Assembly: GCA_011109175.1 (NCBI GenBank)
Contig: RDEW01000069.1
Coordinates: forward strand, 102,184-166,183
Length of the DNA: 64,000 nucleotides
Direction of reading: 5' to 3'
Source of the DNA: Dicyema japonicum
Taxonomy: Eukaryota; Animalia; Dicyemida
Part shown: positions 13,787-53,383 of the stretch, piece after piece
How the letters are laid out: every line of letters begins with the position of its first letter
How positions within the stretch are numbered: the stretch's first letter is position 1
Program-made: the position numbers and the translations under genes
Notes under the pieces: model-generated
Seen by the model: only the letters and a program-made list of their open reading frames with translations
What the model was told of the DNA's origin: nothing
The model's database searches: none

Positions 13787-14389
13787 TATGCTCACTTATG
13801 GTGCGCACTCCTGGTATTGCAGTGAGGAACGCGAAAAGTGCCTCACCAACTTGAGGAAGGTTCGGCGGCGGGCAATACGGTATTCTATAGGATTGTCTTA
13901 TAGAGCGCCGCTGCCTGAAAGAGGATATCCGGATTTTAAGGACCCGGAGGAAGTAATTAAAAAGATCTTAAAACTAAATTAAAGAAGGAGGTACGGGGAA
14001 GACGAAAGTGATGCCACGAAAACGCTGCCGCAAGGCGGTGAAAGGGTACTTAGTTTGGTTGTAGGAAAAAAAGTCAAGTGGAAAAAAGGTCAAGCGGAAA
14101 AAAAAGTCAAGTCCGTAAGCGGAAAAAAGGTCAAGCGGAAAAAAAAGTCAAGTTGTCTTTTTTTAATTTATATCGCATTTTTGTGATACTACTAGCATCT
14201 TTTAATTTTTAAAAATTTTTTCAATACTTGACTTTTTTTCCGCTTGACTTTTTTTCCCCTTACGGACTTGACTTTTTTTCCGCTTGACCTTTTTTCCGCT
14301 TGACTTTTTTTCCGCACTCCACTTAGTTTAGTTCTTCCCTAATTTCTAACTATTTGTTTTTGCCTAATAAAAATTTTTCCTTCCATTCC
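13787..14389 (+). mobile_element. LINE family A, 5'-truncated 3' fragment ending at an H3 5' UTR (interrupted by a MITE)
   Basis: Matches the ORF2 end (MLTYGAHSWYCSEERE...) and 3' UTR of 40371-44648; tail TTCCTTCCATTCC abuts ATCGATAATTTTCATT upstream of the H3 ATG. Confidence 0.92.
14057..14320. mobile_element. Foldback/Mutator-like MITE, 264 bp, 9-bp TSD ACTTAGTTT
   Basis: Ends GGTTGTAGGAAAAAAAGTCAAG / CTTGACTTTTTTTCCGCACTCC; TSD at 14048-14056 and 14321-14329; TIRs built of (GGAAAAAAAGTCAAG) repeats. Confidence 0.88.
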
Positions 14390-14421
14390 ATCGATAATTT
14401 TCATTCATTCATCGATAAATA

Positions 14422-14547
14422 ATGGCACGAACAAAACAAACTGCTAGAAAATCAACTGGAGCAAAAGTTCCAAGGACGAAAATGGTTCAAAAAGTGAGTA
14501 CCAAAGGATCTAAACGGGCGGCAGTTAAAGTTAGTAGCACAACACGT
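14422..14547 (+). CDS. Chimeric histone head: H3 codons 1-18 + TK + H2B codons 1-22, in frame with family-A ORF1
   Basis: [52 protein letters not shown], read directly from ORF 14422-14961. Confidence 0.93.
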
Positions 14548-15320
14548 TCCATAAGAAGTCTCGACGATTATCAGGACATCTCACGTGTGGTCTGTGACAC
14601 AGCGGCCCACGTGGTGGAAGGACTCTTCATAAATAAGCCCACTATTGGACTATATTTTAGAGGAGTCCGAGGTATCGAGAAGCTCAGGAGAGTCGTTCGC
14701 GACTCGATCCTTCTGTCCTTCAGAGTAAACATGGGGATCGATGGCAGGGCTGCTTTCCACACTGTAGCGGACATCCCCACACAGCTAGCGGTTGATCAAG
14801 CTGTGCCTGCACCGAGGAGGATGGAGGTTGAGAGCAAGACTCAGCCTCCTGTAATGGATCCAAGGACCGAGGAAAACATCCCAGCACAGCTAGCGTTGAA
14901 CAAGCTGTGCCTGGGACGAAAAGGATGGAGGTTGAGAGCAAGACTCAGCCTCTTGAAATGAATCAAGGACCGAGAACCGAGGGCAGGGCTGAATCCGTCA
15001 CACAGCCAGCGGTCCAACAGGCTGTGCCTGCCCTCGACGAAGGAAGACAAGAAGACCGTCTCCCGATGACTGTAGGCTGGACTACAGTAGGGAGAAAGAG
15101 GAAGTCTGCGGTTTCTGCCAAACCGCAGAACGTGCGTGATTCGGGTCCAGAAACCGCAAAGTGCCCTAAAAAGCATTTTGCAGGCTCGAATCAATCCAGA
15201 GCGCACGTGCCTAAAGAGAAGAACAAACAACAGGTATTCGGGGGACTAACTACACTAGTTCGGCTAGAGGTGCCGAAGATAGGAGTGGTTAAACTCCTAT
15301 GTGGCATAGGTACTCTGGCT

Positions 15321-16791
15321 GGTTGTAGGAAAAAAAGTCAAGTGGAAAAAAGGTCAAGCGGAAAAAAAAGTCAAGTCCGTAAGCGAAAAAAAGTCAAGCG
15401 GAAAAAAAGTCAAGTTGTCTTTTTTTAGTTTATATCGCATTTTTGTGATACTACTAGCATCTTTTAATTTTTAAAAATTTTTTCAATACTTGACTTTTTT
15501 TCCGCTTGACTTTTTTTCCATTTTTGAAAATTTTTCCTTATAAATTTTCGAAATTTAGCGCAAAATGGAAAAAAAGTCAAGTCCGCTAACGAAATTACGG
15601 ACTTGACTTTTTTCCGCTTTGGTATAATCGCTTTGACTAAATCAATTTAAGAACTTCAAGGTAATAATAAAAAAAATATTTTTTATTATAAAATGAATAA
15701 AAATTAAATTAGGGCATCTGAATGGCCATGCTATTTCCCCTAACAATAGCCAACGAGATACGTTCTCGGAACCAACTAGTCTCTCGCAGATCCTTGGTCA
15801 CAGCTTGAATCATGGAGCCGATCTTACGAACCAACTCATCTGCTTGGGGGCCAAGGATTCATAATATAATAAAATTGACTTAACTTTTTTCGCTTTGGTT
15901 TAATCTTTTTGACCTTGACTTTTTTCGCTTTGGTTTAATCTTTTTGACTTAATCAATATACGGATTTTAATTCCTTTGGAAAAAGAATTTCAACAAGAAC
16001 AAATAAAAAACGATTGATACAAAAAAAAAACTTTTAAATATATTTCTGGATCGCCAGGACGGAAAAAAACAGTAGGAGAGGCCCTAAAACCAATTGCATG
16101 GAATATTAAATATTCTTTTGATTCACATTAAATAATCCCTTGATTCACGTTAAATAAAAATCATATGTTTATTTTTTTTAAAGCCTTTTCATGAGAGCCA
16201 TAGTATTTTATAGCTCCGCATAGGCAGGACACACACTTTATTTAAGTAAAGAACAGTTAATTTTAACTAATCGTAGAACCAAGGAATTATCTTCACTTCT
16301 TTTTTTCTTTTTCTTGTGTGAGTGTCCTTTCTAGACAATTTAGTTAAAAGTAGAAAAAATCATTTTTAGAATTTATTTCCACCACGTGTAGTTTTAGTTG
16401 TGGCGAGACATTGTAATTCATTAACATTAGCCAAAATTAACTATTTAAATAATTTGTTATTCTAAACTCGCTTACTTTAAAATGAAACGATCATGAATAA
16501 AAATCTTAATTTATAAACGGAAAAAAAGTCAAGTCCGTAATTTCGTTAACGGACTTAACTTTTTTTCCGTTTTGCGCTAAATTTCGAAAATTTATAAGGG
16601 AAAAATTTTCAAAAATGGAAAAAAAGTCAAGCGGAAAAAAAGTAAAGTATTGAAAAAATTTTTAAAAATTAAAAGATGCTAGTAGTATCACAAAAATGCG
16701 ATATAAACTAAAAAAAGACAACTTGACTTTTTTTCCGCTTGACTTTTTTTCCGCTTGACCTTTTTTCCCCTTGACTTTTTTTCCGCACTCC
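15321..16791. mobile_element. Foldback/Mutator-like non-autonomous DNA transposon, 1471 bp, 9-bp TSD ACTCTGGCT
   Basis: Same termini as 14057-14320; long imperfect repetitive TIRs; TSD at 15312-15320 and 16792-16800. Confidence 0.9.
15680..15861 (-). mobile_element. 5'-truncated CRE-clade element nested in the MULE
   Basis: Reverse strand reads GILGPQADELVRKIGSMIQAVTKDLRETSWFRERISLAIVRGNSMAIQMP*; matches 2915-2960. Confidence 0.8.
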
Positions 16792-19316
16792 ACTCTGGCT
16801 ACCTATGCGAAAGGAAGGATCGTCAGACGAGGAGAATCCCACTTGTTGGTGGGATTCAGAAATGACGTGGACGCCTCAGCTTTTGAAGCTGAGGTGAATA
16901 AGAAGGTTCCTTTTGGGCCCGGGGCACATAACATGTCTCGGGTCATCCCCAAGGTACACGACTCGATTGTACTAGTCTTCGGAGTCCCTCTGGACTTTGT
17001 TGATGAGGATGTACTCGAGTACATCAAAAAGGACTACCCCACGGCGCACAAGATCGAGCGCTTCAAGAGTGGGAGTCAGAGACTAAGGACTCTCAAGGTC
17101 TGGATCAGGTCCGGAGCAGAAGCTGAGAGGATCTGCCTTGAGAAGTTAAAGATAGGTTACTTTAGATTTGGTGTGGCCCGAGAGCGACCGGTAGCAATCC
17201 AGTGCTACAGATGCCAGGGATTCGGCCACACCAGCTCCCGCTGCACTTATAAAGAGAAGTGCCTAAATTGCGGGGGTCCACATTCACGGAAGGCCTGTCA
17301 ATCCAGAGTCAGGTCTCTCAAGTGCGTGAACTGTGGCTTGGAGGGACACAGGGCGAGCCATACCAAGTGCCCCCTGTATCAGGAGGCGACGGAGAAGGTA
17401 CCACAGGGGAGAAGGCAGGCGCCCTCCTCTGGAGTGGTCAGTGATGTAAGCGCTGTCCACCGCGTGGTAAGTCGATACTGTAGCAGCACAGGTTCAACGT
17501 TCCCTAATGCGCTTAGGGACATTGCGCTCTGCGATAGGAAGGTAAGTGCGGCGAAGTGATGTTACGCATCATTTCAGTTAATGTTAGGTCCCTCCGGAGA
17601 AGAAGGAAGGCCATCGAGGATCTTCTGGACTCTTTGGAGGTGGACATCTTGGTCCTTAACGAGACCAAGAGTAAGGATACGGCTGCTGCAGGCTTTAAAG
17701 GCTATACTAGTTGTCATCTCTTGTGGAATGACACACATAGAGGTTCGGGCACTAGTATCTATTGGAGGACGAGTCTAGCAGCAGTCGTCCAAGGTATTTC
17801 AAATTGTCCTCATTGCGAGTTAATATTATTACGAATCAGATTATCTAGCTTTAGCGTTGTTATAGGGGCAATGTATGCCAAGCAGTTGTGGTTGTGTAAG
17901 GACCACATTAAAACTGTATTTGACATTCATCCCCATTGCGTTATTTTTGGTGATCTGAATGCTAAGCATTCAGATTTTGGCTGTTTTGTTAATAATAGGG
18001 CTGGATCAGCACTCCGGGAATTAGCTTGGAATCTTGGGCTCTCAGTCACTACATCGACGGACCCCAATCACAAAGATACACGAGGAGGAGAGGACTTCTT
18101 GGGTATGGCCGTAGCCTCCCCTTCATTAATTGGTATGCTCTCTGTACCTCGTGTTCTTAGGGACATCGGAAGCGATCACCGTCCCCTACTCACCGAGCTT
18201 CACGAACCTGTTCGACCTCAGGCCCCAATTGGCTATGACTTGGGCTCTGGCACTTGGGATAACCTGGAGTCGTTCATGGATAGAAAACTCCCTTCTCTCA
18301 AAGGGCAAGTTTGTAGTGAAGCGGACGTGGAGGAATTGGATGCCACCCTGGGTGGTATCCTCGAGGAATACATGCGGACTAACTTCCGGTTACGTCCGCA
18401 AGGTGGAGGCTCCGCACGAATTCCAGGCCTGATTTTAAGTAAGATAACACTTAGAAAGAGGTACCTGCGGTTCAAAGCGAGGAGCACGTATGAAGAGAAC
18501 CGGATCTTCTACCAGAAGAAGGTAACACCTTACGAAGGGAAATCCGGAAGGCGCTCGTCGACTATCAGAGCAACAAATGGAGGAGGGCCTGCGAGAGGGT
18601 GAACCCCGCATGGCCGGACTTCTAAGATAATCCAATCCTTTTCGCCTAATTGAAAATGTTTTTCGAGACGCAATGTCGTTTTAAATTGTTAATTCACGGG
18701 AATTTCTAATCATATGCAGTTTCTATCAACTAGCTAAAAATACCTTTAGCCCATAAAACCCAACTTTAATGTAACAAACTAACCAAATAAATCTCAAGTA
18801 CAAAAATAAGACAAATTTTTAATTTTGACACTGTTTAAAAAACAAAAAAACTATATCATTTTCTTTTAATGTAACAAATTTTTAATTTTTGACACTGTTT
18901 AAAAAACAAAAAAACTATTTCAATTTGATTTTAATATAAAAAATTAAATAAATCGCTGTCGAAAAAATTGGGGTCAAAAATCCAGGTTTTTGCGGCTGAT
19001 TGAACTCAAACCAAGTTCATTCAACGCGTCTTGCTTTTGCGCGTTAAAATATGAAATCAGATTGAAAATTGGACGCACGTGGGCGGAGATTTGATAATTG
19101 ATTATTTTTTAGTTTTTAGAAATTAAATTTGTCTATTATTCTTGTTTATGTAAGCCTTGTTAACCTTTAACTAAATTATTTATTTTTTTGATTACCTAAA
19201 TGCTACATTCTAAGATAGTTCTAGATATTGACTTAGTCAGCTAGGCTTACAGTTGGTTAGTAATAATGTAACTTTTTTTTCAAAATAACTCTTGTAAGTG
19301 ACTGATTATTGTATTT

Positions 19317-20170: not shown

Positions 20171-20184
20171 TTTATTGAAAATTC

Positions 20185-22956
20185 AAATCAAATCAAATCA
20201 AATTTATTCCAAAGTAAGTAAGGAGTCAATTAAAGGGATTTTAACGTGTCCGCCTTTGCGGCCTGGACACTTCACACGTATCCCATCTCCATTGTAGTCG
20301 TCCATTTAGTACGTATTGAGAAGCTGGTTTCCCAACCTTACTTCGATATCTATTTTACCGGCCTGACAAGGCTATTCTCTTCCTCGGAGAGGCTTTCATG
20401 TAATTTCCTCCCCAGAGATATTTTTATCGCCGCTCGCCTTGTTTTCTCCAGGCGAGCGAGAATCCTTTCTCTCGAGGGAGTATAATACCATCCCTCGCAT
20501 CCATATATCAGTCTTGGGAGAATCACAGTTTGGAAGATATAGAGCATTGTATCGGCGTCCAGCATAAGTTTTCTGGAGCAGAACATCGCTTGAACGGCCT
20601 TCTTTCTCCGCTCCTCGATGTCCTTCCGGTACGATCCTCTTCCATCCACTGCAATCCCCAGGTATTTCAGGCTAGAGACTCTCGGTATCCGTAGCGTATA
20701 CATCTCTCTCTGGTGTCGATCCAGCCTGCATATTCGCAAGTAACTGGATTTTTCTGTGGATAGTTTCATCCCTCTCCTATCGCACCATGTCCGAACTCTG
20801 TCGACAAAAGCCCCGATTCGTCGCTCAGAGATGTAGGCCTTCAGAGATGAGTCTAGGATTAAGATGTCATCCGCATAAATCATCAGCTTGGTCCTAACGT
20901 TTTGTGGAGAAGGAAAATCTTCCATAAATACGTTGAATAATAGAGGGCTTAGAATAGACCCTGCGGCACTCCCTTTTAAACAATATATCTTCGGAATATC
21001 TTCCACCAACCACCACGTTTGATATTCCTCCCAGTCAACAGGTTCTTCAGCCATAGGAACATTTGTCTTGAATTTTTGATCGAACCAGTTGACAGAATAG
21101 GCCTCGTGCCATACACTGTCGAAAGCCTTAGATGTCAAGGCAGACAAGGCTCAACTGGCTCCTCTTCTCAAAAGCATTTGCAATCTCATAGTTTAGAGAG
21201 TAATGCAATTACCACACGATCTCCCTGGCCGAAAACCCCATTGGTAACACTGTAGAAAATTAATATTTTCTATGTACTGGTTCAATTTCTTGAAAATAAT
21301 CCGTTCCATAATCTTCGATGTAGAACAGATAAGGCTTATAGGCCTATAACTAAGAGGATCTTTCCTCGACTTTCCAGGTTTAGGAATCATCTTTACAATT
21401 GAGTGCTTCCATAGTGAAGGGGAATGTCCGAGCTTGAAACTTGCGTTATACATCTTTTGTAGAACAGACAGAAATTCATCGGATCCTTCTTTAAACATAG
21501 TCATCGGAATGCTATCAAAACCAGGAGCCTTGTTTTTGCACTCCCGTATAGCAGTCTTGACTTCTGCCAATGTGATTTCCTCTACCATACTATTCAGATC
21601 GTCTATGGAGTAATCCATAGAGCTAGATATATCTTCTGAGAATTTTTCGGATATAATACTGACTGGGTCTACTCCCTGTATGTTTTCTAATTGTTTCCTG
21701 AATACTGACGGTACTCTGTCCAGGGGAATTGTTCTTCCATCTTGATCCGCCAGTACAATGTTCTTTGCTCTCATGTTTTTGTTAGTCAGTCTGGAGTACA
21801 ATTTCCACAAGCAAGGATTCTTAAGTGCACTTTCAAGGCTGCTTTCCTAACTTGGTTTTCTGAATACTACTTCCAAGCTCTCTGTAGAACTTTTTGGATA
21901 GCATCAATATTATTTTTCAAAGTTATACTGTCCCACATGTCCACACATCGTCTGTGCTTCGCCTTCAGAGTATTCCTCTCGCGAATAAGTCCCGAATAGA
22001 AGGAGGGCAGGACTGATTCGTTTTCGGAAGGATTTTTGAGTAAATCTTCTTTGCATATAATCGCAGATACATCGTAATAGTATTGGATAAATCTTGGTTG
22101 AAAGAATCCAACTCATTATGTGTAGAAAAGGAATAATTAATCTTCATTAACATACTCTTCGATAAATAATGACGATAATGTTCCCAGTCTACCGACGAGG
22201 TATCATAATACAGAAAAATGTCTTCAATAATATCCGGTTCAAGATTTATAGTCATCTCCATAGGGATATGGTCACTCCCTATATCCCAGAGTAACCTTGG
22301 CCTGTTTACATGGTCTAGTAGTTGTGGAGATACTAAGGCCAATCCCAGCATATCACCCCCGTAGTATGAGAAATGGTTAGGTTCTTCGGTCGTTAAGACT
22401 TCGACTCCAATTTCCCCGACCAAATCTGCTAGTAGTTGACCGTCCCTGTTGTTTCCATAACATCCATAGGTCCTGTTCTTGGCGTTCAAATATCCCACCA
22501 GGATCGACATTGGGTTTCTTTCGAAGAACTCGACAATTTTCACAGAGGACCAGGCCAAGTCCTTAGAATATAGCCCTCCCACGGTTATCCACGTTCCACC
22601 ACATTGCACGTCGACAGACACGAATTCCGAATCGTCGGCCGATATAATGCAGTCGTTTCGAGTTTGCAATAGTTTATGAAAGAAGATTGAGGTTCCTGTT
22701 CCAGCAACTGCTCCATCTTTCCATGGAATGTCCACTGAGTCATATCCTTCCAGAATATAATGCCTTCCTTCTCGAATCTTCGTCTCGTTGACTACCAAGA
22801 CATCTGCCTTGGCAGTCCTCATAAGTAGTGCTAGTTCATCATGCCTTTTCACCAAGGAGCGAGCATTCACCAGCACTAACTTTAGGATTCTTTTCAGATT
22901 TCTTTTTGGTGGCCCGGGCTCTCCATGGCCAGGTCCACCATTTCCCGTAAATCCAC
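20185..22956 (-). mobile_element. LINE family B (APE-RT), 5'-truncated and degenerate, inserted ~15 nt upstream of the H2A ATG
   Basis: APE (LVNARSL, VVNETK, IGSDHIP), RT (YRPISL, QWGFRPGRSC, KAFDSVWH, ILSPLLFN, YADD); 3' end AATAAA + (TTTGA)4; same orientation as H2A; ~36 bp of target deleted. Confidence 0.9.
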
Positions 22957-26388: not shown

Positions 26389-26391
26389 TTT

Positions 26392-26545
26392 ATTGAAAAT
26401 TTTCAATTTTTTCGTACTTATGTTTTTAAATTGTGCTTCCGGAAAAAACTTTTAGAATTAGCATAAGAAAATCAATACTTTCTAAAGTTTATTCTGGAAG
26501 CACAATTTGAAAACATAAGTACGAAAAAATTCAAAAATTTCGATT
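26392..26545. promoter_or_regulatory. Palindromic bidirectional H2A/H2B promoter
   Basis: ~60-bp inverted arms (TTTTTTCGTACTTATGTTTT.AAATTGTGCTTCC.GAA / TTC.GGAAGCACAATTT.AAAACATAAGTACGAAAAAA) around a ~25-bp core. Confidence 0.8.
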
Positions 26546-26554
26546 CTCGGCTAA

Positions 26555-27187: not shown

Positions 27188-27261
27188 ATGTCAGGACGTG
27201 GTAAAGGTGGAAAAGGAGGAAAGTCAGTGCAAAGCGATTTAAAAAGATCCTGATCGATAAC
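27188..27261 (+). CDS. H4 head (codons 1-25) fused to family-A ORF1
   Basis: ...GATAAC|GTAAGAAGTTTGGAC; in frame once the single G missing in TCAG(G)TGCA is restored. Confidence 0.85.
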
Positions 27262-28878
27262 GTAAGAAGTTTGGACGATTATGAGGACATCTCACGTGTG
27301 GTCTGCGACACAGCGGCCCACGTGGTACAAGGACTCTTCGAAAATAAGCCCTCTATTGGATTATATTTTAGAGGAGTCCGAGGAGTCGAGAAGCTCAGAA
27401 GGGTCGTTCGCGACTCGATCCTTCTGTCGTTCAGAGTCAATATGGGGATCGATGGCAGGGCTGCTTTCCACACTGCAGCGGACATCCCCACACAGCAAGC
27501 GGTTGATCAAGCTGTGCCTGCACCGAGGAGGATGGAGGTTGAGAGCAAGACTCAGCCTCTTGAAATGAATCAAGGACCGAGAACCGAGGGCAGGGCTGAA
27601 TCCGTCACACAGCCGCGGTCCAACAGGCTGTGCCTGCCCTCGACGAAGGAAGACAAGAGGACCGTCTCCCAATGACTGTAGGCTGGACTACAGTAGGGAG
27701 AAAGAGGAAGTCTGCGGTTTCTGCCAAACCGCAGAACGTGCGTGATTCGGGTCCAGAAACCGCAAAGTGCCCTAAAAAGCATTTTGCAGGCTCGAATCAA
27801 TCCAGAGCGCACGTGCCGAAAGAAAAGAAGAAAGAACAGGTATTCGGAGGACTAACTACACTAGTTCGGCTAGAGGTGCCGAAGATGGGAGTGGTTAAAC
27901 TCCTAAGTGGCATAGGTACTCTGGCTACCTATGCGAAAGGAAGGATCGTCAGACGAGGAGAATCCCACTTGTTGGTGGGATTCAGAAATGACGTGGACGC
28001 CTCAGCTTTTGAAGCTGAGGTGAATAAGAAGGTTCCTTTTGGGCCCGGGGCACATAACATGTCTCGGGTCATCCCCAAGGTACACGACTCGATTGTACTA
28101 GTCTTCGGAGTCCTCTGGACTTTGTTGATGAGGATGTACTCGAGTACATCAAAAAGGACTACCCCACGGCGCACAAGATCGAGCGCTTCAAGAGTGGGAG
28201 TCAGAGATTAAGGACTCTCAAGGTCTGGATCAGGTCCGGAGCAGAAGCTGAAAGGATCTGCCTTGAGAAGTTAAAGATAGGTTACTTTAGATTTGGTGTG
28301 GCCCGAGAGCGACCGGTAGCAATCCAGTGCTACAGATGCCAGGGATTCGGCCACACCAGCTCCCGCTGCACTTAATAAAGAGAAGTGCCTAAATTGCGGG
28401 GGTCCACATTCGCGGAAGGCTTGCCAAACAAGTGGCAAGTCTCTCAAGTGCGTGAACTGTGGCGCAAAAGGACACAGGGCGAGCCATACCAAGTGCCCCC
28501 TGTATCAGGAGGCGACGGAGAAGGTACCACAGGGGAGAAGGCAGGCGCCCTCCTCTGGAATGGTCAGTGATGTAGGCACTATCCATCGGATGGTGAGTAA
28601 CTATTGCAATGCCACTGGGGCTTCGCTCCAAACGGCACTTAGGGATATCGCGTTATCTCATAGGTTAAATAATGCGTCGAAGGGATGCTCAACATCGTCT
28701 TCGAAACAGGAGGACTTTAGAATATGACGAAGACTTTTATAAAACGAAGGAGGCACGGGGAAGACGAATGTGATGGCACGAAAACGCTGCCGCAAGGCGG
28801 TGAAAGGGCCTTTAGTTAGTTCTTCCCTAACTTAACATTTGTTTTTTTGCCTAATAAAGATTTTTCCGTTTTTCTTCC
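27262..28878 (+). mobile_element. LINE family A, ORF1-only short form, in H4
   Basis: ORF1 ends ..SKQEDFRI*, then the shared 3' UTR, AATAAA and TTCC tail; H4 restarts at 28879. Confidence 0.92.
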
Positions 28879-37529: not shown

Positions 37530-37822
37530 TTTTTACTTGATATAATAAAGAAAACTTGTTTTCTAACCATTTTTTTCCTTACATAAAAATAGCCCACGTG
37601 TCATAATCTTAACAAAAGAATGTTTTTTATTAATTTTAACGCAATAAGAACGTTTTTTATTATTTTAACGCTATTTAAAAAGTCCGTTTTAGTGTGTTTT
37701 CCAATTTTCACTTTAATATCGATTTGTGCTTCCGTGAAAAACTTTTAATATTATCGATTTGTGCTTCGGCGAAAAATTTTTGCGTCGTCAATTTATAAAC
37801 GCCAAATTTGGAGCGCAAAGCA

Positions 37823-38460: not shown

Positions 38461-38541
38461 AAATTTTTGATTTAGACTATGGTTCAAAAAGTTAGCACTA
38501 AAGGATCTAAACGGGCTGCAGTTAAAGTTAGTAGCACAACA
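38461..38541 (+). other. Ectopic H2B 5' UTR plus first 21 codons placed just after the H3 TATA-like box
   Basis: ...TATTAATACA|AAATTTTTGATTTAGACTATGGTTCAAAAAG matches H2B at 37143-37220. Confidence 0.92.
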
Positions 38542-40302
38542 AGTTCCGTAAGAAGTTTGGACGATTACCAGGACATCTCACGTGTGGTCTGTGATACAGC
38601 GGCCCACGTGGTAAATGGACTCTTCGAAAATAAGCCCTCTATTGGATTATATTTTAGAGGAGTCCGAGGAGTCGAGAAGCTCAGAAGGGTCGTTCGCGAC
38701 TCGATCCTTCTGTCGTTCAGAGTCAATATGGGGATCGATGGCAGGGCTGCTTTCCACGCTGCAGCGGACATCCCCACACAGCAAGCGGTTGATCAAGCTG
38801 TGCCTGCACCGAGGAGGATGGAGGTTGAGAGCAAGACTCAGCCTCCTATAATGGATCAAGGGACATGGAAAAAGACCAGGCCTACTTCATACACATCAGA
38901 GGACATCCCCACACAGCAAGCGGTTGAACAAGCTGTGCCTGCACCGAGGAGGATGGAGGTTGAGAGCAAGACTCAGCCTCTTGAAATGAATCAAGGACCG
39001 AGAACCGAGGGCAGGGCTGAATCCGTCACACAGCCAGCGGTCCAACAGGCTGTGCCTGCCCTCGACGAAGTGCGACAAGAGGACCATCTCCCAATGACTG
39101 TAGGCTGGACTACAGTAGGGAGAAAGAGGAAGTCTGCGGTTTCTGCCAAACCGCAGAACGTGCGTGATTCGGGTCCAGAAACCGCAAAGTGCCCTAAAAA
39201 GCATTTTGCAGGCTCGAATCAATCCAGAGCGCACGTGCCGAAAGAAAAGAAGAAAGAACAGGTATTCGGAGGACTAACTACACTAGTTCGGCTAGAGGTG
39301 CCGAAGATGGGAGTGGTTAAACTCCTAAGTGGCATAGGTACACTGGCTACCTATGCGAAAGGAAGGATCGTCAGACGAGGAGAATCCCACTTGTTGGTGG
39401 GATTCAGAAATGACGTGGACGCCTCAGCTTTTGAAGCTGAGGTGAATAAGAAGGTTCCTTTTGGGCCCGGGGCACATAACATGTCTCGGGTCATCCCCAA
39501 GGTACACGACTCGATTGTACTAGTCTTCGGAGTCCCTCTGGACTTTGTTGATGAGGATGTACTCGAGTACATCAAAAAGGACTACCCACGGCGCACAAGA
39601 TCGAGCGCTTCAAGAGTGGGAGTCAGAGACTAAGGACTCTCAAGGTCTGGATCAGGTCCGGAGCAGAAGCTGAAAGGATCTGCCTTGAGAAGTTAAAGAT
39701 AGGTTACTTTAGATTTGGTGTGGCCCGAGAGCGACCGGTAGCAATCCAGTGCTACAGATGCCAGGGATTCGGCCACACCAGCTCCCGCTGCACTTATAAA
39801 GAGAAGTGCCTAAATTGCGGGGGTCCACATTCGCGGAAGACTTGCCAAACAAGTGGCAAGTCTCTCAAGTGCGTGAACTGTGGCGCGGAGGGACACAGGG
39901 CGAGCCATACCAAGTGCCCCCTGTATCAGGAGGCGACGGAGAAGGTACCACAGGGGAGAAGGCAGGCGCCCTCCTCTGGAGTGGTCAGTGATGTAGGCAC
40001 TATCCATCGGATGGTGAGTAACTATTGCAATGCCACTGGGGCTTCGCTCCAAACGGCACTTAGGGATATAGCGTTATCTCATAGGTTAAATAATGCGTCG
40101 AAGGGATGCTCAACATCGTCTTCGGAACAGGAGGACTTTAGAATATGACGAAGACTTTTATAAAACGAAGGAGGCACGGGGAAGACGAATGTGATGGCAC
40201 GAAAACGCTGCCGCAAGGCGGTGAAAGGGCCTTTAGTTAGTTCTTCCCTGATTACTTAACATTTGTTTTTTTGCCTAATAAAGATTTTTCCGTTCCGTTC
40301 CG
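38542..40302 (+). mobile_element. LINE family A, ORF1-only short form, H2B-headed
   Basis: ORF 38479-39633 fused in frame; tail TTCCGTTCCGTTCCG. Confidence 0.92.
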
Positions 40303-40309
40303 TTAGACT

Positions 40310-41938
40310 ATGGTTCAAAAAGTTAGCACAAAAGGATCTAAACGGGCTGCAGTTAAAGTTAGTAGCACAAAAAGTTCCGTAAGAAGTTTGGACGATTACC
40401 AGGACATCTCACGTGTGGTCTGTGATACAGCGGCCCACGTGGTAAATGGACTCTTCGAAAATAAGCCCTCTATTGGATTATATTTTAGAGGAGTCCGAGG
40501 AGTCGAGAAGCTCAGAAGGGTCGTTCGCGACTCGATCCTTCTGTCCTTCCGAATAAACATGGGGATCGATGGCAGGGCTGCTTTCCACGCTGCAGCGGAC
40601 ATCCCCACACAGCAAGCGGTTGATCAAGCTGTGCCTGCACCGAGGAGGATGGAGGTTGAGAGCAAGACTCAGCCTCCTATAATGGATCAAGGGAAATGGA
40701 AAAAGACCAGGCCTACTTCATACACATCAGAGGACATCCCCGCACAGCTAGCGGTTGAACAAGCTGTGCCTGGGACGAGGAGGATGGAGGTTGAGAGCAA
40801 GACTCAGCCTCTTGAAATGAATCAAGGACCGAGAACAGAGGGCAGGGTTGAATCCGTCACACAGCCAGCGGTCCAACAGGCTGTGCCTGCCCTCGACGAA
40901 GGAAAACAAGAGGACCGTCTCCCGATGACTGTAGGCTGGACTACAGTAGGGAGAAAGAGGAAGTCTGCGGTTTCTGCCAAACCGCAGAACGTGCGTGATT
41001 CGGGTCCAGAAACCGCAAAGTGCCCTAAAAAGCATTTTGCAGGCTCGAATCAATCCAGAGCGCACGTGCCGAAAGAAAAGAAGAAAGAACAGGTATTCGG
41101 AGGGCTAACTACACTAGTTCGGCTAGAGGTGCCGAAGATGGGAGTGGTTAAACTCCTAAGTGGCATAAGTAGTCTGGCTACCTATGCGAAAGGAAGGGTC
41201 GTCAGACGAGGAGAATCCCACTTGTTGGTGGGATTCAGAAATGACGTGGACGCCTCAGCTTTTGAAGCTGAGGTGAATAAGAAGGTTCCTTTGGGCCCGG
41301 GGCACATAACATGTCTCGGGGTCATCCCCAAGGTACACGACTCGATTGTACTAGTCTTCGGAGTCCCTCTGGACTTTGTTGATGAGGATGTACTCGAGTA
41401 CATCAAAAAGGACTACCCCACGGCGCACAAGATCGAGCGCTTCAAGAGTGGGAGTCAGAGACTAAGGACTCTCAAGGTCTGGATCAGGTCCGGAGCAGAA
41501 GCTGAGAGGATCTGCCTTGAGAAGTTAAAGATAGGTTACTTTAGATTTGGTGTGGCCCGAGAGCGACCGGTAGCAATCCAGTGCTACAGATGCCAGGGAT
41601 TCGGCCACACCAGCTCCCGCTGCACTTATAAAGAGAAGTGCCTAAATTGCGGGGGTCCACATTCACGGAAGGCCTGTCAATCCAGAGTCAGGTCTCTCAA
41701 GTGCGTGAACTGTGGCTTGGAGGGACACAGGGCGAGCCATACCAAGTGCCCCCTGTATCAGGAGGCGACGGAGAAGGTACCACAGGGGAGAAGGCAGGCG
41801 CCCTCCTCTGGAGTGGTCAGTGATGTAAGCGCTGTCCACCGCGTGGTAAGTCGATACTGTAGCAGCACAGGTTCAACGTTCCCTAATGCGCTTAGGGACA
41901 TTGCGCTCTGCGATAGGAAGGTAAGTGCGGCGAAGTGA
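40310..41938 (+). CDS. H2B-head::ORF1 fusion protein (542 aa, gag-like, three CCHC zinc knuckles)
   Basis: [32 protein letters not shown]...CYRCQGFGHTSSRC, CLNCGGPHSRKAC, CVNCGLEGHRASHTKC. Confidence 0.93.
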   Translation: MVQKVSTKGSKRAAVKVSSTKSSVRSLDDYQDISRVVCDTAAHVVNGLFENKPSIGLYFRGVRGVEKLRRVVRDSILLSFRINMGIDGRAAFHAAADIPTQQAVDQAVPAPRRMEVESKTQPPIMDQGKWKKTRPTSYTSEDIPAQLAVEQAVPGTRRMEVESKTQPLEMNQGPRTEGRVESVTQPAVQQAVPALDEGKQEDRLPMTVGWTTVGRKRKSAVSAKPQNVRDSGPETAKCPKKHFAGSNQSRAHVPKEKKKEQVFGGLTTLVRLEVPKMGVVKLLSGISSLATYAKGRVVRRGESHLLVGFRNDVDASAFEAEVNKKVPLGPGHITCLGVIPKVHDSIVLVFGVPLDFVDEDVLEYIKKDYPTAHKIERFKSGSQRLRTLKVWIRSGAEAERICLEKLKIGYFRFGVARERPVAIQCYRCQGFGHTSSRCTYKEKCLNCGGPHSRKACQSRVRSLKCVNCGLEGHRASHTKCPLYQEATEKVPQGRRQAPSSGVVSDVSAVHRVVSRYCSSTGSTFPNALRDIALCDRKVSAAK

Positions 41939-44519
41939 TGTTACGCATCATTTCAGTTAATGTTAGGTCCCTCCGGAGAAGAAGGAAGGCCATCGAGGAT
42001 CTTCTGGACTCTTTGGAGGTGGACATCTTGGTCCTTAACGAGACCAAGAGTAAGGATACGGCTGCTGCAGGCTTTAAAGGCTATACTAGTTGTCATCTCT
42101 TGTGGAATGACACACATAGAGGTTCGGGCACTAGTATCTATTGGAGGACGAGTCTAGCAGCAGTCGTCCAAGGTATTGCAAATTGTCCTCATTGCGAGCT
42201 AATATTATTACGAATCAGGTTATCTGGCTTTAGCGTTGTTATAGGGGCAATGTATGCCAAGCAGTTGTGGTTGTGTAAGGACCACATTAAAACTGTATTT
42301 GACATTCATCCCCATTGCGTTATTTTTGGTGATCTGAATGCTAAGCATTCAGATTTTGGCTGTTTTGTTAATAATAGGGCTGGATCAGCACTCCGGGAAT
42401 TAGCTTGGAATCTTGGGCTCTCAGTCACTACATCGACGGACCCCAATCACAAAGATACACGAGGAGGAGAGGACTTCTTGGGTATGGCCGTAGCCTCCCC
42501 TTCATTAATTGGTATGCTCTCTGTACCTCGTGTTCTTAGGGACATCGGAAGCGATCACCGTCCCCTACTCACTGAGCTTCACGAACCTGTTCGACCTCAG
42601 GCCCCAATTGGCTATGACTTGGGCTCTGGCACTTGGGATAACCTGGAGTCGTTCATGGATAGAAAACTCCCTTCTCTCAAAGGGCAAGTTTGTAGTGAAG
42701 CGGACGTGGAGGAATTGGATGCCACCCTGGGTGGTATCCTCGAGGAATACATGCGGACTAACTTCCGGTTACGTCCGCAAGGTGGAGGCTCCGCACGAAT
42801 TCCAGGCCTGATTTTAAGTAAGATAACACTTAGAAAGAGGTACCTGCGGTTCAAAGCGAGGAGCACGTATGAAGAGAACCGGATCTTCTACCAGAAGAAG
42901 GTAAACACCTTACGAAGGGAAATCCGGAAGGCGCTTGTTGACTATCAGAGCAACAAATGGAGGAGGGCCTGCGAGAGGGTGAACCCCGCATGGCCGGACT
43001 TCTGGAGTCAGCTGAAGCGCCTGTCGGGCAGAGGGGAAGAGTCATCTGCGCGTACCCTGTGTCGTGCGGACGGTTCTAAAACCTCTGACCCGACTGAAAT
43101 AGCGAGCATCTTTGCAGGTAGCTTTAGGGCAGTTACTGCAGTTCGACCAGAGAACTTTGTCGAGTTAACAGCTCGACAAAGTATAGAGGACGTCATCTCT
43201 GCGGAGAGACGGAAGTTGAGCCACTCTCGGGAGATCCCGAAGGTGGCATGCATCACCGAGGAGGAGGTCCGGGCCGCGATAAGTAAATCGAAGAACAACG
43301 CACCGGGCCAAGACAAGATCCCCATGGCCCTTTTCAAGAAAGGACCTGGAAGTCTCGTGAACACCTTGGTAAGATTGTACAACGGTAGTACAGGTTGGGT
43401 TACGTTCCTAGGCGTTGGAAGGAAGCGGAACTGGTTTTTGTAAGGAAACCAGGAAAACCTCCTGAAGACCCTAGTAGCTACCGCCCTATAAGCTTGTTAC
43501 CTGCCGTTGCTAAAATCTTAGAGAGAGTGATACACCAGAGGTTAACCCAGGAATGCATAATAAAAGACACCCTCTCGGACCTTCAGATGGGATTCCGTGA
43601 GGGGCGTTCCTGTGGGGACTGCCTCTGGAGGTTGAGCTCTCAGATTCGTGAAAGGAGCAAGAAGCAATGCACAGCCGCGTTGTTCCTGGATGTGGAGAGG
43701 GCGTTCGACTCGGTCTGGCATGACGGCCTCCGTTGCGCCCTCGCAGAAGGAGGAATATCTCTGGAGCTAAGGAGCTGGTTATCAAGCTTCTTAGAGGATC
43801 GGATGAACTATGTAAGGCATAAAGGTTGCCGATCTAGTTTGTTTAGATCTAACCGGGGAGTTCCACAAGGGTCGGTTTTGAGCCCCACCCTTTTCAACGT
43901 TTACATGTCTACACTTCCCCACCCAGCCAATGTGAGGACGGAGATGGCTATCTATGCGGACGACATAGTACTCTGGGATCACTCGTGGAAACCAGATGTA
44001 GCGTGTCGGAGGATTCAAGTAGCTGTCAATGAAATCATACGCTGGTGTGGGAGCAGAGGACTTAGGCTGAGACCTGAGAAATGTAAGTTATTAGTTTTTG
44101 GCCGCCCTAAGCGGTCTAATAATTTAATACCTAGAGTAACCATCTATGGGGTACCTATAGAGGTTACTGGGCGGACGAGCTACCTTGGAGTGACATTCAA
44201 CTCCAAGTGTAGTTTCCAGGAGCACACCGCCCTCGTTAAGAGGCGGGCTGTGCAAAGATTAGGAGCGTTGAGGGCTTTTCAGCTGAGTCGCGATGCCTGG
44301 GCCAAAGTGTTCAACGCCATGGTGCTGCCTATGCTCACCTATGGTGCGCACTCCTGGTATTGTAGTGAGGAACGCGAAAAGTGCCTCACCAACTTGAGGA
44401 AGGTTCGGCGGCGGGCAATACGGTATTCTATAGGATTGTCTTATAGAGCGCCGCTGCCCGAAAGAGGATATCCGATTTCAGGACCCGAGGAAGTGATTAA
44501 AAAGATCTTAAAAAATTAA
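41938..44519 (+). CDS. ORF2: AP endonuclease + reverse transcriptase (Jockey/I-group-like; no RNase H seen); 1-bp indels near 43390 and 44475
   Basis: ISVNVRSL, LVLNETK, GDLNAKH, IGSDHRP; YRPISLL, QMGFREGRSC, DVERAFDSVWH, GVPQGSVLSPTLFN, YADD, YLGVTF. Starts by a TGATG overlap with the ORF1 stop. Confidence 0.95.
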
Positions 44520-44557
44520 AGAAGGAGGCACGGGGAAGACGAATGGATGCACGAAAA

Positions 44558-44575
44558 CGCTGCCGCAAGGCGGTG
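44558..44575 (+). other. 3' UTR hairpin of family A (CGCTGCC-GCAA-GGCGGTG, GNRA loop)
   Basis: 7-bp stem with two G-U pairs; conserved in nearly all family-A 3' ends. Confidence 0.6.
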
Positions 44576-44675
44576 AAAGGGCCTTAGTTAGTTCTTCCCT
44601 ATTACTTAACATTTGTTTTTTGCCTAATAAAGATTTTTCCTTCCTTTCAATCGATAATTTTCATTTTCATTAATA

Positions 44676-45086
44676 ATGGCACGAACAAAACAAACTGCTA
44701 GAAAATCAACTGGAGCAAAAGTTCCAAGGAAACAGCTTTCTGCTAAATCTGCACGCAAGTCAGTTTCTCAATTGGGTGGTGTAAAGAAACCACATCGCTT
44801 TCGTCCTGGTGTCGTGGCAATGAGGGAGATCAGAAGATATCAAAAGAGTACTGACCTTCTATTGCGAAAGACACCGTTCCAAAGGGTTGTTAGAGAAGCA
44901 GCACAATTTATGAAGACAGATTTACGTTTCCAATCATCGGCCATTGTTGCTCTTCAGGAGGCTGCAGAGACTTATTTGGTCGGGATTTTTGAGGATAGTA
45001 ATTTGTGTGCAATACATGGAAAACGAGTAACAATAATGCCACAGGATATGCACCTAGCAAGGAGAATTCGTGGTGAAAAAACATAA
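44676..45086 (+). CDS. H3: Histone H3 (intact, downstream of element)
   Basis: 136-aa ORF. Confidence 0.97.
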
Positions 45087-47575: not shown

Positions 47576-47666
47576 ATGTCAGGACGTGGTAAAGGTGGAA
47601 AAGGAGGAAAGTCAGGTGCAAAGCGATTCAAAAAGATCCTGATCGATAACATTCAGGGGATCACAA
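47576..47666 (+). CDS. H4 head (30 codons) fused in frame to family-A ORF1
   Basis: ...[24 protein letters not shown] in ORF 47561-47854. Confidence 0.92.
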
Positions 47667-49404
47667 CACATTCCGTACGAAATCTTGAGGATTATGAGGA
47701 CATCTCACGTGTGGTCTGCGACACAGCGGCCCACGTGGTACAAGGACTCTTCGAAAATAAGCCCTCTATTGGATTATATTTTAGAGGAGTCCGAGGAGTA
47801 GAGAAGCTCAGAAGGGTCGTTTCGCGACTCGATCCTTCTGTCATTCAGAGTTAATATGGGGATCGATGGCAGGGCTGCTTTCCACACTGCAGCGGACATC
47901 CCCACACAGCAAGCGGTTGATCAAGCTGTGCCTGCACCGAGGAGGAGGATGGAGGTTGAGAGCAAGACTCAGCCTCCTGTAATGGATCCAAGGACCGAGG
48001 AAAACATCCCAGCACAGCTAGCGGTTGAACAAGCTGTGCCTGGGACGAGGAGGATGGATGTTGAGAGCAAGACTCAGCCTCTTGAAAAGAATCAAGGACC
48101 GAGAACCGAGGGCAGGGCTGAATCCGTCACACAACCAGCGGTCCAACAGGCTGTGCCTGCCCTCGACGAAGTGCGACAAGAGGACCATCTCCCGATGACT
48201 GTAGGCTGGACTACAGTAGGGAGAAAGAGGAAGTCTGCGGTTTCTGCCAAACCGCAGAACGTGCGTGATTCGGGTCCAGAAACCGCAAAGTGCCCTAAAA
48301 GCATTTTTGCAGGCTCGAATCAATCCAGAGCGCACGTGCCGAAAGAAAAGAAGAAAGAACAGGTATTCGGAGGACTAACTACACTAGTTCGGCTAGAGGT
48401 GCCGAAGATGGGAGTGGTTAAACTCCTAAGTGGCATAGGTACACTGGCTACCTATGCGAAAGAAGGATCGTCAGACGAGGAGAATCCCACTTGTTGGTGG
48501 GATTCAGAAATGACGTGGACGCCTCAGCTTTTGAAGCTGAGGTGAATAAGAAGGTTCCTTTTGGGCCCGGGGCACATAACATGTCTCGGGTCATCCCCAA
48601 GGTACACGACTCGATTGTACTAGTCTTCGGAGTCCCTCTGGACTTTGTTGATGAGGATGTACTCGAGTACATCAAAAAGGACTACCCCACGGCGCACAAG
48701 ATCGAGCGCTTCAAGAGTGGGAGTCAGAGACTAAGGACTCTCAAGGTCTGGATCAGGTCCGGAGCGGAAGCTGAGAGGATCTGCCTTGAGAAGTTAAAGA
48801 TAGGTTACTTTAGATTTGGTGTGGCCCGAGAGCGACCGGTAGCAATCCAGTGCTACAGATGCCAGGGATTCGGCCACACCAGCTCCCGCTGCACTTATAA
48901 AGAGAAGTGCCTAAATTGCGGGGGTCCACATTCGCGGAAGGCTTGCCAAACAAGTGGCAAGTCTCTCAAATGCGTGAACTGTGGCGCAGAAGGACACAGG
49001 GCGAGCCATACCAAGTGCCCCCTGTATCAGGAGGCGACGGAGAAGGTACCACAGGGGAGAAGGCAGGCGCCCTCCTCTGGAATGGTCAGTGATGTAGGCA
49101 CTATCCATCGGATGGTGAGTAACTATTGCAATGCCACTGGGGCTTCGCTCCAAACGGCACTTAGGGATATCGCGTTATCTCATAGGTTAAATAATGCGTC
49201 GAAGGGATGCTCAACATCGTCTTCGAAACAGGAGGACTTTAGAATATGACGAAGACTTTTATAAAACGAAGGAGGCACGGGGAAGACGAATGTGATGGCA
49301 CGAAAAACGCTGCGCAAGGCGGTGAAAGGGCCTTTAGTTAGTTCTTCCCTGATTACTTAACATTTGTTTTTTGCCTAATAAAGATTTTTCCATTCCATTT
49401 TTCC
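47667..49404 (+). mobile_element. LINE family A, ORF1-only short form, in H4
   Basis: Tail TTCCATTCCATTTTTCC joins GCGAAAAA, 55 nt upstream of the H4 ATG. Confidence 0.92.
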
Positions 49405-49459
49405 GCGAAAAACCTTTTGCGTCGTCAATTTATAAACGCCAAATTTGGAGCGCAAAGCA

Positions 49460-51818: not shown

Positions 51819-52181
51819 TTAAGTGGATGCTGGTTTTGCGGGCTCAGCACTTTTGCGACAGATGTATCTTCCGCAAGAGATTATTGCATTTTGGGTAAGT
51901 TCTTTTAATTCGTCATCGGCATTGATTGCGACAGACAGGTGACAAGGTTTGATCCTTCGCTTTGCAGCCTTGAGTGCAGTATTACCACAAAGTTCCAGCA
52001 CTTCAGCACATAGATACTCCATTACAGCTCCAACGTAGATGGCAGCACCAACTGCAACTCGCATTCTGGTCTCACTTCTCAAGCATCTATGAATTCGACC
52101 AACTGGAAATTGCAAGCCTGCTCTAACTGATTTGCTTTTCGCTTTTGTACGTACTTTTCCACCTTTGCCGCGAGTAGACAT
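51819..52181 (-). CDS. H2A: Histone H2A
   Basis: Identical protein. Confidence 0.97.
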   Translation of the reverse strand: MSTRGKGGKVRTKAKSKSVRAGLQFPVGRIHRCLRSETRMRVAVGAAIYVGAVMEYLCAEVLELCGNTALKAAKRRIKPCHLSVAINADDELKELTQNAIISCGRYICRKSAEPAKPAST

Positions 52182-52361
52182 TTTATTGAAAATTTTGAAT
52201 TTTTTCGTACTTATGTTTTTAAATTGTGCTTCCGGAAAAAACTTTTAGAATTAGCATAAGAAAATCAATACTTTCTAAAGTTTTTTCTGGAAGCACAATT
52301 TGAAAACATAAAGTACGAAAAAATTCAAAATTTCGATTTCAGAATTTAGATTGACAAGACT

Positions 52362-52728
52362 ATGGTTCAAAAAGTGAGTACTAAAGGATCTAAACGGCGG
52401 CAGTTAAAGTTAGCAGCACCACACGTGCCTTACGAAAAAAGAAAAAGCGATCCCAAAACTATCATTTGTACATTCTGAGGATTTTGAAATCTGTCCACAC
52501 TGATTTGGGGATGTCAAAGAAAGCTATGATGGCTATGGACAGCTTTACTTTTGACATTTACGAAAAAATCAAGAACGAAGCTTGCAATCTAGTCCAGCAT
52601 AATAGCAAAGCTACTATCACATCAGAGAAATTCAAACAGCAGTACGCTTGATTTTGCCTGGAGAATTAGCAAAGCATGCTATTACCGAAGGGGCAAAGGC
52701 GGTCACCAAGTATACCAATACTAAGTGA
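52362..52728 (+). CDS. H2B: Histone H2B (two 1-bp indels)
   Basis: Matches intact copies. Confidence 0.9.
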
Positions 52729-53019
52729 TTTTTACTTGATATAATAAAGAAAACTTGTTTTCTAACATTTTTTTTTACATAAAAATAGCCCACGTGTCAT
52801 AATCTTAACAAAAGAATGTTTTTTATTAATTTTAACGCAATAAGAACGTTTTTTATTAATTTTAACGCTATTTAAAAAGTTCGTTTTAGTGTGTTTTCCA
52901 ATTTTCACTTTAATATCGATTTGTGCTTCCGTGAAAAACTTTTAATATTATCGATTTGTGCTTCGGCGAAAAATTTTTGCGTCGTCAATTTATAAACGCC
53001 AAATTTGGAGCGCAAAGCA

Positions 53020-53383
53020 ATGTCTGGACGTGGTAAAGGTGGAAAAGGAGGAAAGTCAGGTGCAAAGCGATTCAAAAAGATCCTGATCGATAACATTCAG
53101 GGGATCACAAGTAACGAAGTTTGGAGATTATCAGGACATCTCACGTGTGGTCTGTGATACAGCGGCCACGTGGTAAAGGACTCTTCGAAAATAAGCCTCT
53201 ATTGGATTATATTTTAGAGGAGTCCGAGGAGTAGAGAAGCTCAGAAGGGTCGTTCGCGACTCGATCCTTCTGTCGTTCAGAGTCAATATGGGGATCGATG
53301 GCAGGGCTGCTTTCCACACTGCAGCGGACATCCCCACACAGCAAGCGGTTGATCAAGCTGTGCCTGCACAGGAGGATGGAGGT
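53020..53383 (+). mobile_element. H4 head (53020-53110) plus 5' end of a family-A copy running into a gap
   Basis: ATCACAA|GTAACGAAGTTTGGAGATTATCAGGAC; low-quality sequence. Confidence 0.85.

Follow-up and report, generated by a model that had tools for sequence, protein, structure and literature searches.

A Dicyema japonicum LINE family that carries histone heads on ORF1 and probably captures histone promoters and start codons

The stretch analyzed here, a 64-kb window of the genome of the dicyemid Dicyema japonicum (GCA_011109175.1, contig RDEW01000069.1, positions 102,184 to 166,183 of the forward strand), contains a tandem histone array that has been invaded by a long interspersed nuclear element (LINE), called family A below. 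Family A is a LINE of the apurinic/apyrimidinic endonuclease (APE) type, with a gag-like open reading frame 1 (ORF1) and an ORF2 that encodes an endonuclease and a reverse transcriptase. It possesses no start codon of its own and, it appears, no promoter either, and it is probably a promoter- and ATG-capturing LINE that integrates close to transcription start sites, not a safe-haven specialist. Plain coordinates refer to the window, and C-numbers (C2, C20, C35, and so on) denote sequences of the D. japonicum assembly (67,542,437 bases in 377 pieces). In the paper describing that assembly (67.5 Mb, 377 scaffolds), histones are never mentioned and LINEs appear only as "multiple copies of LINE ORF2" (PMC6736024).

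The ORF listing, together with BLAST of four histone coding sequences against the window, placed the histone array between ~14,400 and 54,200, with a repeating unit of H2A(-), H2B(+), H4(+), and H3(+) that measures ~3.65 kb without insertions. A BLAST search of the window with the full-length family-A copy at 40303-44648 revealed eight copies in the array, all on the + strand and sense to H2B, H4, and H3 (Table 1), in agreement with the initial annotation of the window, which had counted at least eight. Reading of the junctions also bore out its statement that six intact 3' ends lie just upstream of an H3, H4, or H2B-head ATG, the distances being 6 to 55 nucleotides (nt). The tails of the array copies are TTCC, GTTCC, or ATTCC runs of unequal length, and their 5' junctions lie at H4+75, H4+91, H4+92, H3+55, or upstream of H3 (plus signs count nt of histone coding sequence, and minus signs below count nt before the ATG). 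Since tails, subfamily sequences of the 3' untranslated region (3'UTR), and 5' junctions all differ, the array insertions are mostly (at least six of them) independent of each other and not the result of unit amplification, as had been proposed.

The most informative feature of family A is the 5' end of ORF1. A histone head precedes ORF1 on all of the ~20 copies that reach its 5' start, whether in the array or dispersed (base-by-base reading covered about a dozen, and the rest were judged from match coordinates only; Table 1). The H2B and H2A heads and the 72-73%-diverged H4 head on C312 meet ORF1 at one codon (N-x-D/E-D/K-Y-E-D), and in composite heads newer heads are stacked on older ones. 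Of the nine types of head junction, eight keep ORF1 in frame with the histone ATG (P = 0.001). ORF1 proper contains no ATG before codon ~84, yet the 58 codons from the head to the first internal Met are open in subfamilies of 72-84% DNA identity, with 36-57% of the codon differences in this interval being synonymous, and translation of ORF1 must therefore start in the head. The heads travel with the element: dispersed copies start at, or a few nt before, the histone ATG, lack the promoter, and retain no more than 0-18 nt of histone leader, as expected if the RNA begins where transcription of the histone gene does and the head is copied together with it. Array copies, by comparison, sit behind complete H4 or H3 promoters.

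These fusions are not confined to the assembly. The H3+55/CGAAA/H2B junction was found in contigs of unassembled sequencing runs at a depth of ~1,200, and the H4+75/LINE junction was found in unassembled runs that include one from 2015, from another study and with another organism label (LINE pieces 97-100% identical). Uninterrupted H3 and H2B flanks were present in such contigs as well. The expectation that the junctions would be seen in unassembled data was thus borne out for these two, with the rider that depth suggests most H3 genes to be uninterrupted. In contigs of the largest run, summed depth was ~740,000 at the H3 start versus 20,000-60,000 over the LINE body, or ~16x, a figure that, like all copy numbers drawn from summed contig depths, is a rough ratio only. 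This ratio suggests that most H3 genes have no family-A copy and that the assembly collapses the real array, of which the assembled stretch seems to be a segment full of transposons and in partial decay.

The positions at which the element joins the histone genes point to transcription starts. Measured in uninterrupted promoters from the first base of the TATA-like box, the 3' junction site lies at 22 nt in H3, at 23 nt in H4, and at 21 nt in H2A, the last being an insertion of a second LINE family, family B. In the composite promoter at 38451, the H3 TATA-like box is followed after 22 nt by TAGACT, the 5' end of the next copy, a spacing consistent with a second insertion having landed at the start site of the earlier one. 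For H2B, the longest leader carried by a LINE begins 19 nt past the H2B TATA-like box. From the TATA spacing and the start of this leader, we infer that the 3' junctions coincide with transcription starts. At its 5' end, the element joins the histone coding sequence at +36 to +92. Insertion therefore fuses the promoter, leader, ATG, and 12-30 N-terminal codons to ORF1 and leaves a second copy of the head segment (a duplication of 83-146 bp within the array), together with the rest of the histone gene, without a promoter downstream of the element. Such an arrangement speaks against the multicopy safe haven suggested in the initial annotation, as insertion severs the histone gene from its promoter, and the promoter, the start, the ATG, and the N-terminal codons pass to ORF1 of the element. 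The joining of an H2B-headed element at H3+55 or at H4+63 to +92 speaks for a genuine break of the top strand, 55-100 bp downstream of the first nick.

In the mechanism that we propose, the template strand would be nicked at or beside the histone transcription start, where reverse transcription would be primed, and the break in the top strand would lie ~55-100 bp downstream, so that the target duplication would be unusually long. Integration may involve tethering to the transcription complex at the RNA polymerase II (Pol II) TATA-like box or start site of histone genes. The captured histone promoter and ATG would then drive ORF1 expression, and only in-frame fusions, which alone would give ORF1 protein from the histone ATG, would leave descendants. 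ORF2 would be translated via stop-start coupling at the TGATG overlap, and transcripts would end at the AATAAA of the element. Copies landing away from a histone promoter would be dead on arrival, which would explain why there are many dispersed copies alongside a dependence on histone genes, and the redundancy of the histone array would buffer the cost to the host.

Genome-wide, histone starts are a strong preference of family A and not a strict target. When the last 391 nt of family A were searched against the whole assembly and the flanks were read, 7 of ~23 independent intact 3' junctions were found to lie no more than 60 nt before a histone ATG and in the sense orientation, an enrichment with a Poisson P of 2e-27 if 50 histone genes are counted and of 3e-14 if 4,000 are assumed. 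Enrichment at histone starts had been predicted in the initial annotation, together with a histone-specific family; the latter is contradicted by the remaining ~16 intact 3' ends, which lie outside histone genes, and it is because most intact ends have non-histone flanks that we speak of preference rather than specificity. At histone starts, all 10 of 10 insertions are in the sense orientation. The same H3 nucleotide has been used by three subfamilies with different tails (14389, 44648, and a copy on C246, the sole further one outside the array with H3 next to it, which has the third kind of tail), and H4 has received two insertions at -8/-9 and one at -55.

Repeated use of one H3 nucleotide by different subfamilies, the two strikes on H4 at -8/-9, and the uniform sense orientation are what one would expect of strict sequence-specific targeting, with an endonuclease that recognizes histone starts as a multicopy safe haven in the way that R1 and R2 recognize 28S ribosomal DNA (rDNA). 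We nevertheless regard it as very unlikely. Apart from the many intact 3' ends at unrelated sequences and the H4 site at -55, the H3, H4, H2A, and H2B-leader sites have no sequence in common by inspection, only their distance from the TATA-like box, and a site at which insertion cuts the gene from its promoter is not harmless. H4 and H3 protein searches of the assembly revealed a second histone array on C20, with three units ~3.2 kb apart, and one more unit on C223; DNA searches with either element end or with the head junctions gave no family-A match on the C20 array. The claim that every histone unit carries an insertion therefore holds in the window, if family B is counted, and fails genome-wide, where the C20 array and the H3 depth stand against it.

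Several observations weigh against start-site-proximal capture as well. Non-histone flanks adjoin ~16 of ~23 intact 3' ends, one of the 13 dispersed 3' flanks opens an ORF versus 13% in the background, and no endonuclease target motif is evident. The H4 junction at -55 lies upstream of the TATA box, within a conserved motif, TGTGCTTCCG(C/G)GAAAAA. We infer both the transcription starts, from TATA spacing and LINE-borne leaders, and the expression of the fusions. The assembly was made from short reads with long-read scaffolding, it has gaps and a collapsed array, and several of its histone genes carry 1-nt indels. At the dispersed copies on C35, C2, and C46, for which both ends are in hand, no long or clear target duplication was found, the longest words common to both flanks being 7-8 nt and lying away from the junctions. 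Finally, the H4+91 junction, with its H2B remnant, is identical in two units that have different 3' junctions (-9 and -55), which fits heads carried in by the RNA at least as well as it fits fresh duplications.

The last two points bear on homology-guided integration, in which a nick at the start site would be followed by pairing of the RNA-borne head cDNA with the head of the target, with no long staggered break. In line with this idea, the RNA does carry heads, as dispersed copies demonstrate, and the head and the downstream gene of the same unit differ by single-nucleotide polymorphisms. It leaves unexplained the first captures and the heterologous stacking (an H2B-headed element at H3+55, at H4+63, +75, +91, and +92, and at H2B+36; an H2A head; and the C312 H4 head at the first codon of the core), which need a top-strand break 36-92 nt into a nonhomologous target. 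Nor does it explain the positions of the 3' junctions. As a substitute for start-site-proximal capture with a long break it is therefore unlikely, although the identical H4+91 junction and the missing long duplications at C35, C2, and C46 leave room for RNA-borne heads that healed by homology in some events.

The identical H4+91 junction, present in at least two units, could also be taken to mean that there is no targeting and that chance insertions were multiplied by unequal crossing-over, gene conversion, or misassembly, the heads being 5' transductions from one master copy. C61 is indeed a segmental copy of the first array unit of the window, with its H3+H2B-headed element, C35 holds a tandem duplicate, and the assembly is collapsed and gapped. 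Against this, the array contains at least six different combinations of 3' junction and tail and at least five different 5' junctions, the heads come from four histone types and occur on subfamilies down to ~66-84% DNA identity, family B and a third family arrived independently, the junctions are present in reads, including those of a run from another study, and the enrichment keeps a P of ~1e-14 even with the whole array treated as one region. An origin by chance and multiplication is thus highly improbable. Least credible of all, in our view, is a general hot spot, in which open, nicked, or replication-stressed S-phase histone promoters would be used by any LINE, with neither tethering nor recognition on the part of the element, and family A would have adapted afterwards. 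That two LINE families with endonuclease regions only 30% identical both land there, that the sites have no common sequence motif, and that families A and B are both mostly dispersed would suit such a hot spot. It is hard to square with junctions 21-23 nt from a TATA-like box in four contexts, strictly in sense, and with the lack of an excess at other gene starts among the 13 dispersed flanks. General targeting of gene starts was rejected on that last count.

The assignment of family A to the APE-type LINEs rests on Pfam matches in ORF2 to Exo_endo_phos (1.4e-13), Exo_endo_phos_2 (9e-10), and RVT_1 (1.4e-40), the same domains being found in family B, and in ORF1 to zf-CCHC_6 and zf-CCHC. Consistent with this assignment, some copies are 5' truncated (13787, 57640, C13, and C113) and there are tails of short tandem repeats of the TTCC, GTTCC, ATTC, or (in family B) TTTGA type. 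No terminal repeat was seen at the ends read base by base, and no repeat search aimed at long terminal repeats was made. The best named database relatives are insect proteins automatically labeled "jockey" (~36% identity). Pfam gave no match to an RNase H or a C-terminal knuckle in family A, and a homologue search with ORF1 gave matches in the CCHC region only. Among solved structures, the reverse transcriptase aligns about equally to those of R2 and L1 ORF2p, and the endonuclease domain has only weak matches, to generic AP endonucleases; placement in a clade from solved structures was dropped on these grounds. In both families A and B, AATAAA is preceded by a short GC hairpin (CCGC-AAG/AAAG-GCGG) that lies ~70-90 nt upstream of the tail (44540-44600 in family A; 20230-20290, minus strand, in family B) and through which the reverse transcriptase may recognize the 3'UTR.

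Five array copies are a short form that consists of ORF1 and the last ~130 nt, without ORF2, and that has breakpoints in common. Since C2 and C46 hold the same form under different heads, it is a mobile nonautonomous derivative of family A.

Histone starts are used by other LINEs too. Family B, whose endonuclease is 30% identical to that of family A, is a high-copy, mostly dispersed family with 179 candidates in the assembly. At its insertion in the window, ~37 nt of the H2A promoter are missing. On C223, a further family-B copy can be aligned up to a 3' end at 725357, ~20 nt before the expected H2B ATG; family B probably also inserts at the H2B start, as judged by coordinates only, those of H4 and H3 on C223. 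The closest database relative of the family-A reverse transcriptase is an "uncharacterized protein" from an Octopus sinensis assembly (54% identity). The contig of this protein in the octopus assembly (GCA_006345805.1, VCDQ01012037.1:170454-191230) carries a LINE of a third family, at ~6227-10700 of that stretch. Its ORF2 is 42-55% identical to that of family A, and its ORF1 starts in frame with 28 H3 codons bearing dicyemid-specific substitutions. This H3 head is 91% identical to the C20 H3 genes, the element body matches the D. japonicum assembly at only 75-77%, and the flank contains a repeat that is high copy in D. japonicum at ~75%. Dicyemids live in octopus kidneys. Most likely the contig is DNA of a related dicyemid; horizontal transfer is the other way in which such a sequence could have arisen. 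In either case, the histone-head habit is common to LINE families of ancient divergence.

It is tempting to ask whether the histone tail on the ORF1 protein is functional, and not merely the price of a borrowed start codon, by engaging S-phase importins or chaperones or by drawing the protein to the histone locus or its transcription machinery. We consider this rather doubtful. If it were true, the tail would return the RNA-protein particle to histone promoters in a self-reinforcing loop of targeting and expression, and use of the same strategy by at least three LINE families that are 30-55% identical in ORF2 would be adaptation and not accident.

To our knowledge, the known target-preferring LINEs use rRNA, small nuclear RNA, spliced-leader, tRNA, telomeric, or microsatellite targets and none of them protein-coding histone genes, and we know of none that takes its start codon and an N-terminal peptide from a host gene by in-frame fusion. 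A full-text literature search found no description of such an element, which is not proof, given that subscription journals and Repbase lie mostly outside such a search. R1 and R2 are promoterless elements that reside in tandem multicopy rDNA and are cotranscribed from the host promoter, the redundancy of the array tolerating inserted units. Family A resembles them in apparently being promoterless, in residing in a redundant tandem host array, and in depending on a host promoter; what rDNA is to R elements, the histone array appears to be to family A. Unlike R1 and R2, it uses protein-coding genes transcribed by Pol II and not rRNA genes transcribed by Pol I, its specificity is loose, it displaces the host gene from its promoter without splitting the gene, and it is predicted to be translated from the host ATG as an in-frame fusion. 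A further difference is the lack of a 5' ribozyme match: Rfam gave none in 13000-61000 at E<=1, its only hits being spurious microRNA matches to the palindromic H2A-H2B spacer, although a ribozyme of a novel kind may be present.

The SLACS, CZAR, and CRE elements insert into trypanosomatid spliced-leader genes a few nt past the Pol II start, carry the host leader on their transcript, and make a 49-bp duplication. Family A likewise inserts near a presumed Pol II start in a tandem gene, with a long duplication. Those elements differ from it in having a restriction-like endonuclease, one-nucleotide site specificity, a small RNA target, and no coding fusion. R9 of bdelloid rotifers, an R2-type element in 28S rDNA, makes a 126-bp target-site duplication, and the duplications of ~55-146 bp seen here are similarly of exceptional length; either a staggered break or RNA-borne heads could be their source. 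HAL1, an ORF1-only half-L1, and SART1, with its UAAUG stop-start coupling, provide partial parallels from other lineages. The family-A short form, like HAL1, is mobile and nonautonomous and has ORF1 without ORF2, and the TGATG overlap of ORF1 and ORF2 resembles that of SART1, suggesting coupled translation. The short form of family A is set apart by swapping heads (H2B, H4, and H2A). TRE5-A of Dictyostelium (PMC5391098) and Ty3 of yeast (PMC6673722, PMC5911963) integrate at a set distance from a transcription landmark, regardless of the sequence there, which suggests that they are tethered to a transcription complex. The family-A junctions, at 21-23 nt from a TATA-like box in four contexts and in constant orientation (with the exception at -55), are comparable, and TRE5-A is also an APE-type LINE. 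TRE5-A and Ty3 differ in using Pol III genes and TFIIIB/TFIIIC; for family A, histone genes would supply the landmark in the form of a Pol II TATA-like box or start site, and the tethering is presumed.

What sets family A apart from these systems is the histone protein-coding target, the loose specificity, and the in-frame use of a host start codon and N-terminal tail. If promoter and ATG capture is the right reading, family A represents a new expression route for a promoterless retrotransposon, which takes over a Pol II promoter, start site, and ATG, as well as a likely case of Pol II start-site-guided integration, an APE-type element that gives duplications of 55-146 bp, and a natural series of histone-tail::gag fusion proteins. 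For annotation, "divergent histones" and "histone-tail mimics" called in D. japonicum should be read as the front ends of these LINEs.

Table 1. LINE copies, histone heads, and associated features (window coordinates unless a C-number is given)
Feature	Position	Strand	Description
Family-A 3' fragment	13787-14389	+	5' truncated; foldback element inside at ~14056-14321; tail ends 32 nt before H3 ATG, at site ATCGATAATTTT
H3 head	14390-14476	+	32-nt H3 leader and first 55 nt of H3 coding sequence, upstream of next LINE copy
Family-A copy, composite head	14477-18623	+	CGAAA, then H2B head 14482-14557, in frame with H3 ATG 14422; ORF1 up to 15320; 1.47-kb foldback insertion 15321-16793; ORF1 end and endonuclease part 16794-18623; 3' truncated
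Family-B LINE	20183-22956	-	Endonuclease and reverse transcriptase; 5' truncated; (TTTGA)n tail ends 12 nt before H2A ATG (20170), sense to H2A
H4 head and short-form family-A copy	27188-28878	+	H4 coding nt 1-75; LINE part 27262-28878, ORF1 and 3'UTR, no ORF2; tail ends 8 nt before H4 ATG 28887; H4 copy there frameshifted
H4 head, H2B remnant, and short-form family-A copy	32443-34267	+	H4 nt 1-91; LINE part 32533-34267; tail ends 9 nt before intact H4 gene at 34277
Short-form family-A copy	38461-40302	+	18-nt H2B leader and 76-nt H2B head, ATG 38479; joined straight behind H3 TATA-like box (TATTAATA at ~38451); tail abuts next copy at TAGACT; 3' junction 40302/3, 6-7 nt before next H2B-head ATG
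Full-length family-A copy	40303-44648	+	6-nt H2B leader, H2B head 40310-40385; ORF1 40310-41938 with CCHC knuckles; ORF1 stop and ORF2 start overlap, TGATG, at 41936-41940; ORF2 (endonuclease and reverse transcriptase) to 44519, split over two frames near 43390-43443; 3'UTR with AATAAA 10 nt before TTCC-type tail
Intact H3 gene	44649-45086	+	Leader only 26-27 nt; promoter now upstream of two LINE copies
H4 head, H2B remnant, and short-form family-A copy	47576-49404	+	H4 nt 1-91, in frame from H4 ATG; LINE part 47667-49404; tail ends 55 nt before H4 ATG 49460; that H4 frameshifted but keeps TATA box
H4 head and family-A 5' part	53020-53383	+	H4 nt 1-92; LINE part 53112-53383; third junction type, out of frame as it stands; runs into N gap 53384-53899
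Family-A fragment	57640-60514	+	Truncated at both ends; outside histone array
H2B nt 1-76 head	38479, 40310; C223, C2; C68, C373, C190		C68, C373, and C190 are older copies
H3 nt 1-55, CGAAA, and H2B head	14422; C61		
H2B nt 1-36, 9 nt, and H2B head	C223		
H4 nt 1-91, 1-75, 1-92, or 1-63 and 7-20-nt H2B remnant	Array units; C35, C224		
H2A head	C46		84% subfamily
Degenerate H4 head	C312		Subfamily ~72% identical in ORF1, 66% over junction query
Dispersed copies with intact 3' end	C35 (duplicated pair), C310, C365, C13 (two), C2, C179, C223, C290, C351, C318, C355, C316, C46		Unrelated flanks

The histone genes of the array show some further features. Single-nucleotide indels occur in H4 (28887 and 49460), H3 (29572), and H2B (23073, 37162, and 52362), and of the three H4 copies that lie downstream of a LINE without their promoter, two are affected. 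The indels represent either decay of displaced genes or errors of long-read gap filling. The histone 3' stem-loop is absent after every array gene (window 13000-61000), and AATAAA lies ~10-17 nt past each histone coding sequence (for example, at 34586-34620, 35371-35400, 32149-32175, and 31210-31245). The array histone mRNAs are probably polyadenylated, to judge by these signals, which would be unusual among metazoan replication-type histone genes. The motif TGTGCTTCCG(C/G)GAAAAA mentioned above is conserved upstream of H2A, H2B, H3, and H4, with two copies before H4 (examples at 34880-34900, 37765-37790, and 26440-26470), and is a candidate histone-specific promoter element. The H2A-H2B spacer of 166 nt is a near-perfect inverted repeat that gives spurious microRNA matches in Rfam.

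Foldback elements resembling miniature inverted-repeat transposable elements are found inside family-A copies at 14056-14321 and 15321-16793 and also on C61, and their ends are inverted arrays of a 16-mer (GGAAAAAAAGTCAAGY / CTTGACTTTTTTTCCG). On C35 (872271-886395), a family-A copy whose H4 head has no ATG lies 20 nt upstream of a FLYWCH-type ORF, and this 6.9-kb unit is tandemly duplicated in full. Next to the histone array, the family-A fragment at 57640-60514 is part of a ~7.2-kb tandem repeat that continues past the window (C343:166184-176183) and that also holds an 80%-identical ORF1 fragment (60880-61091).

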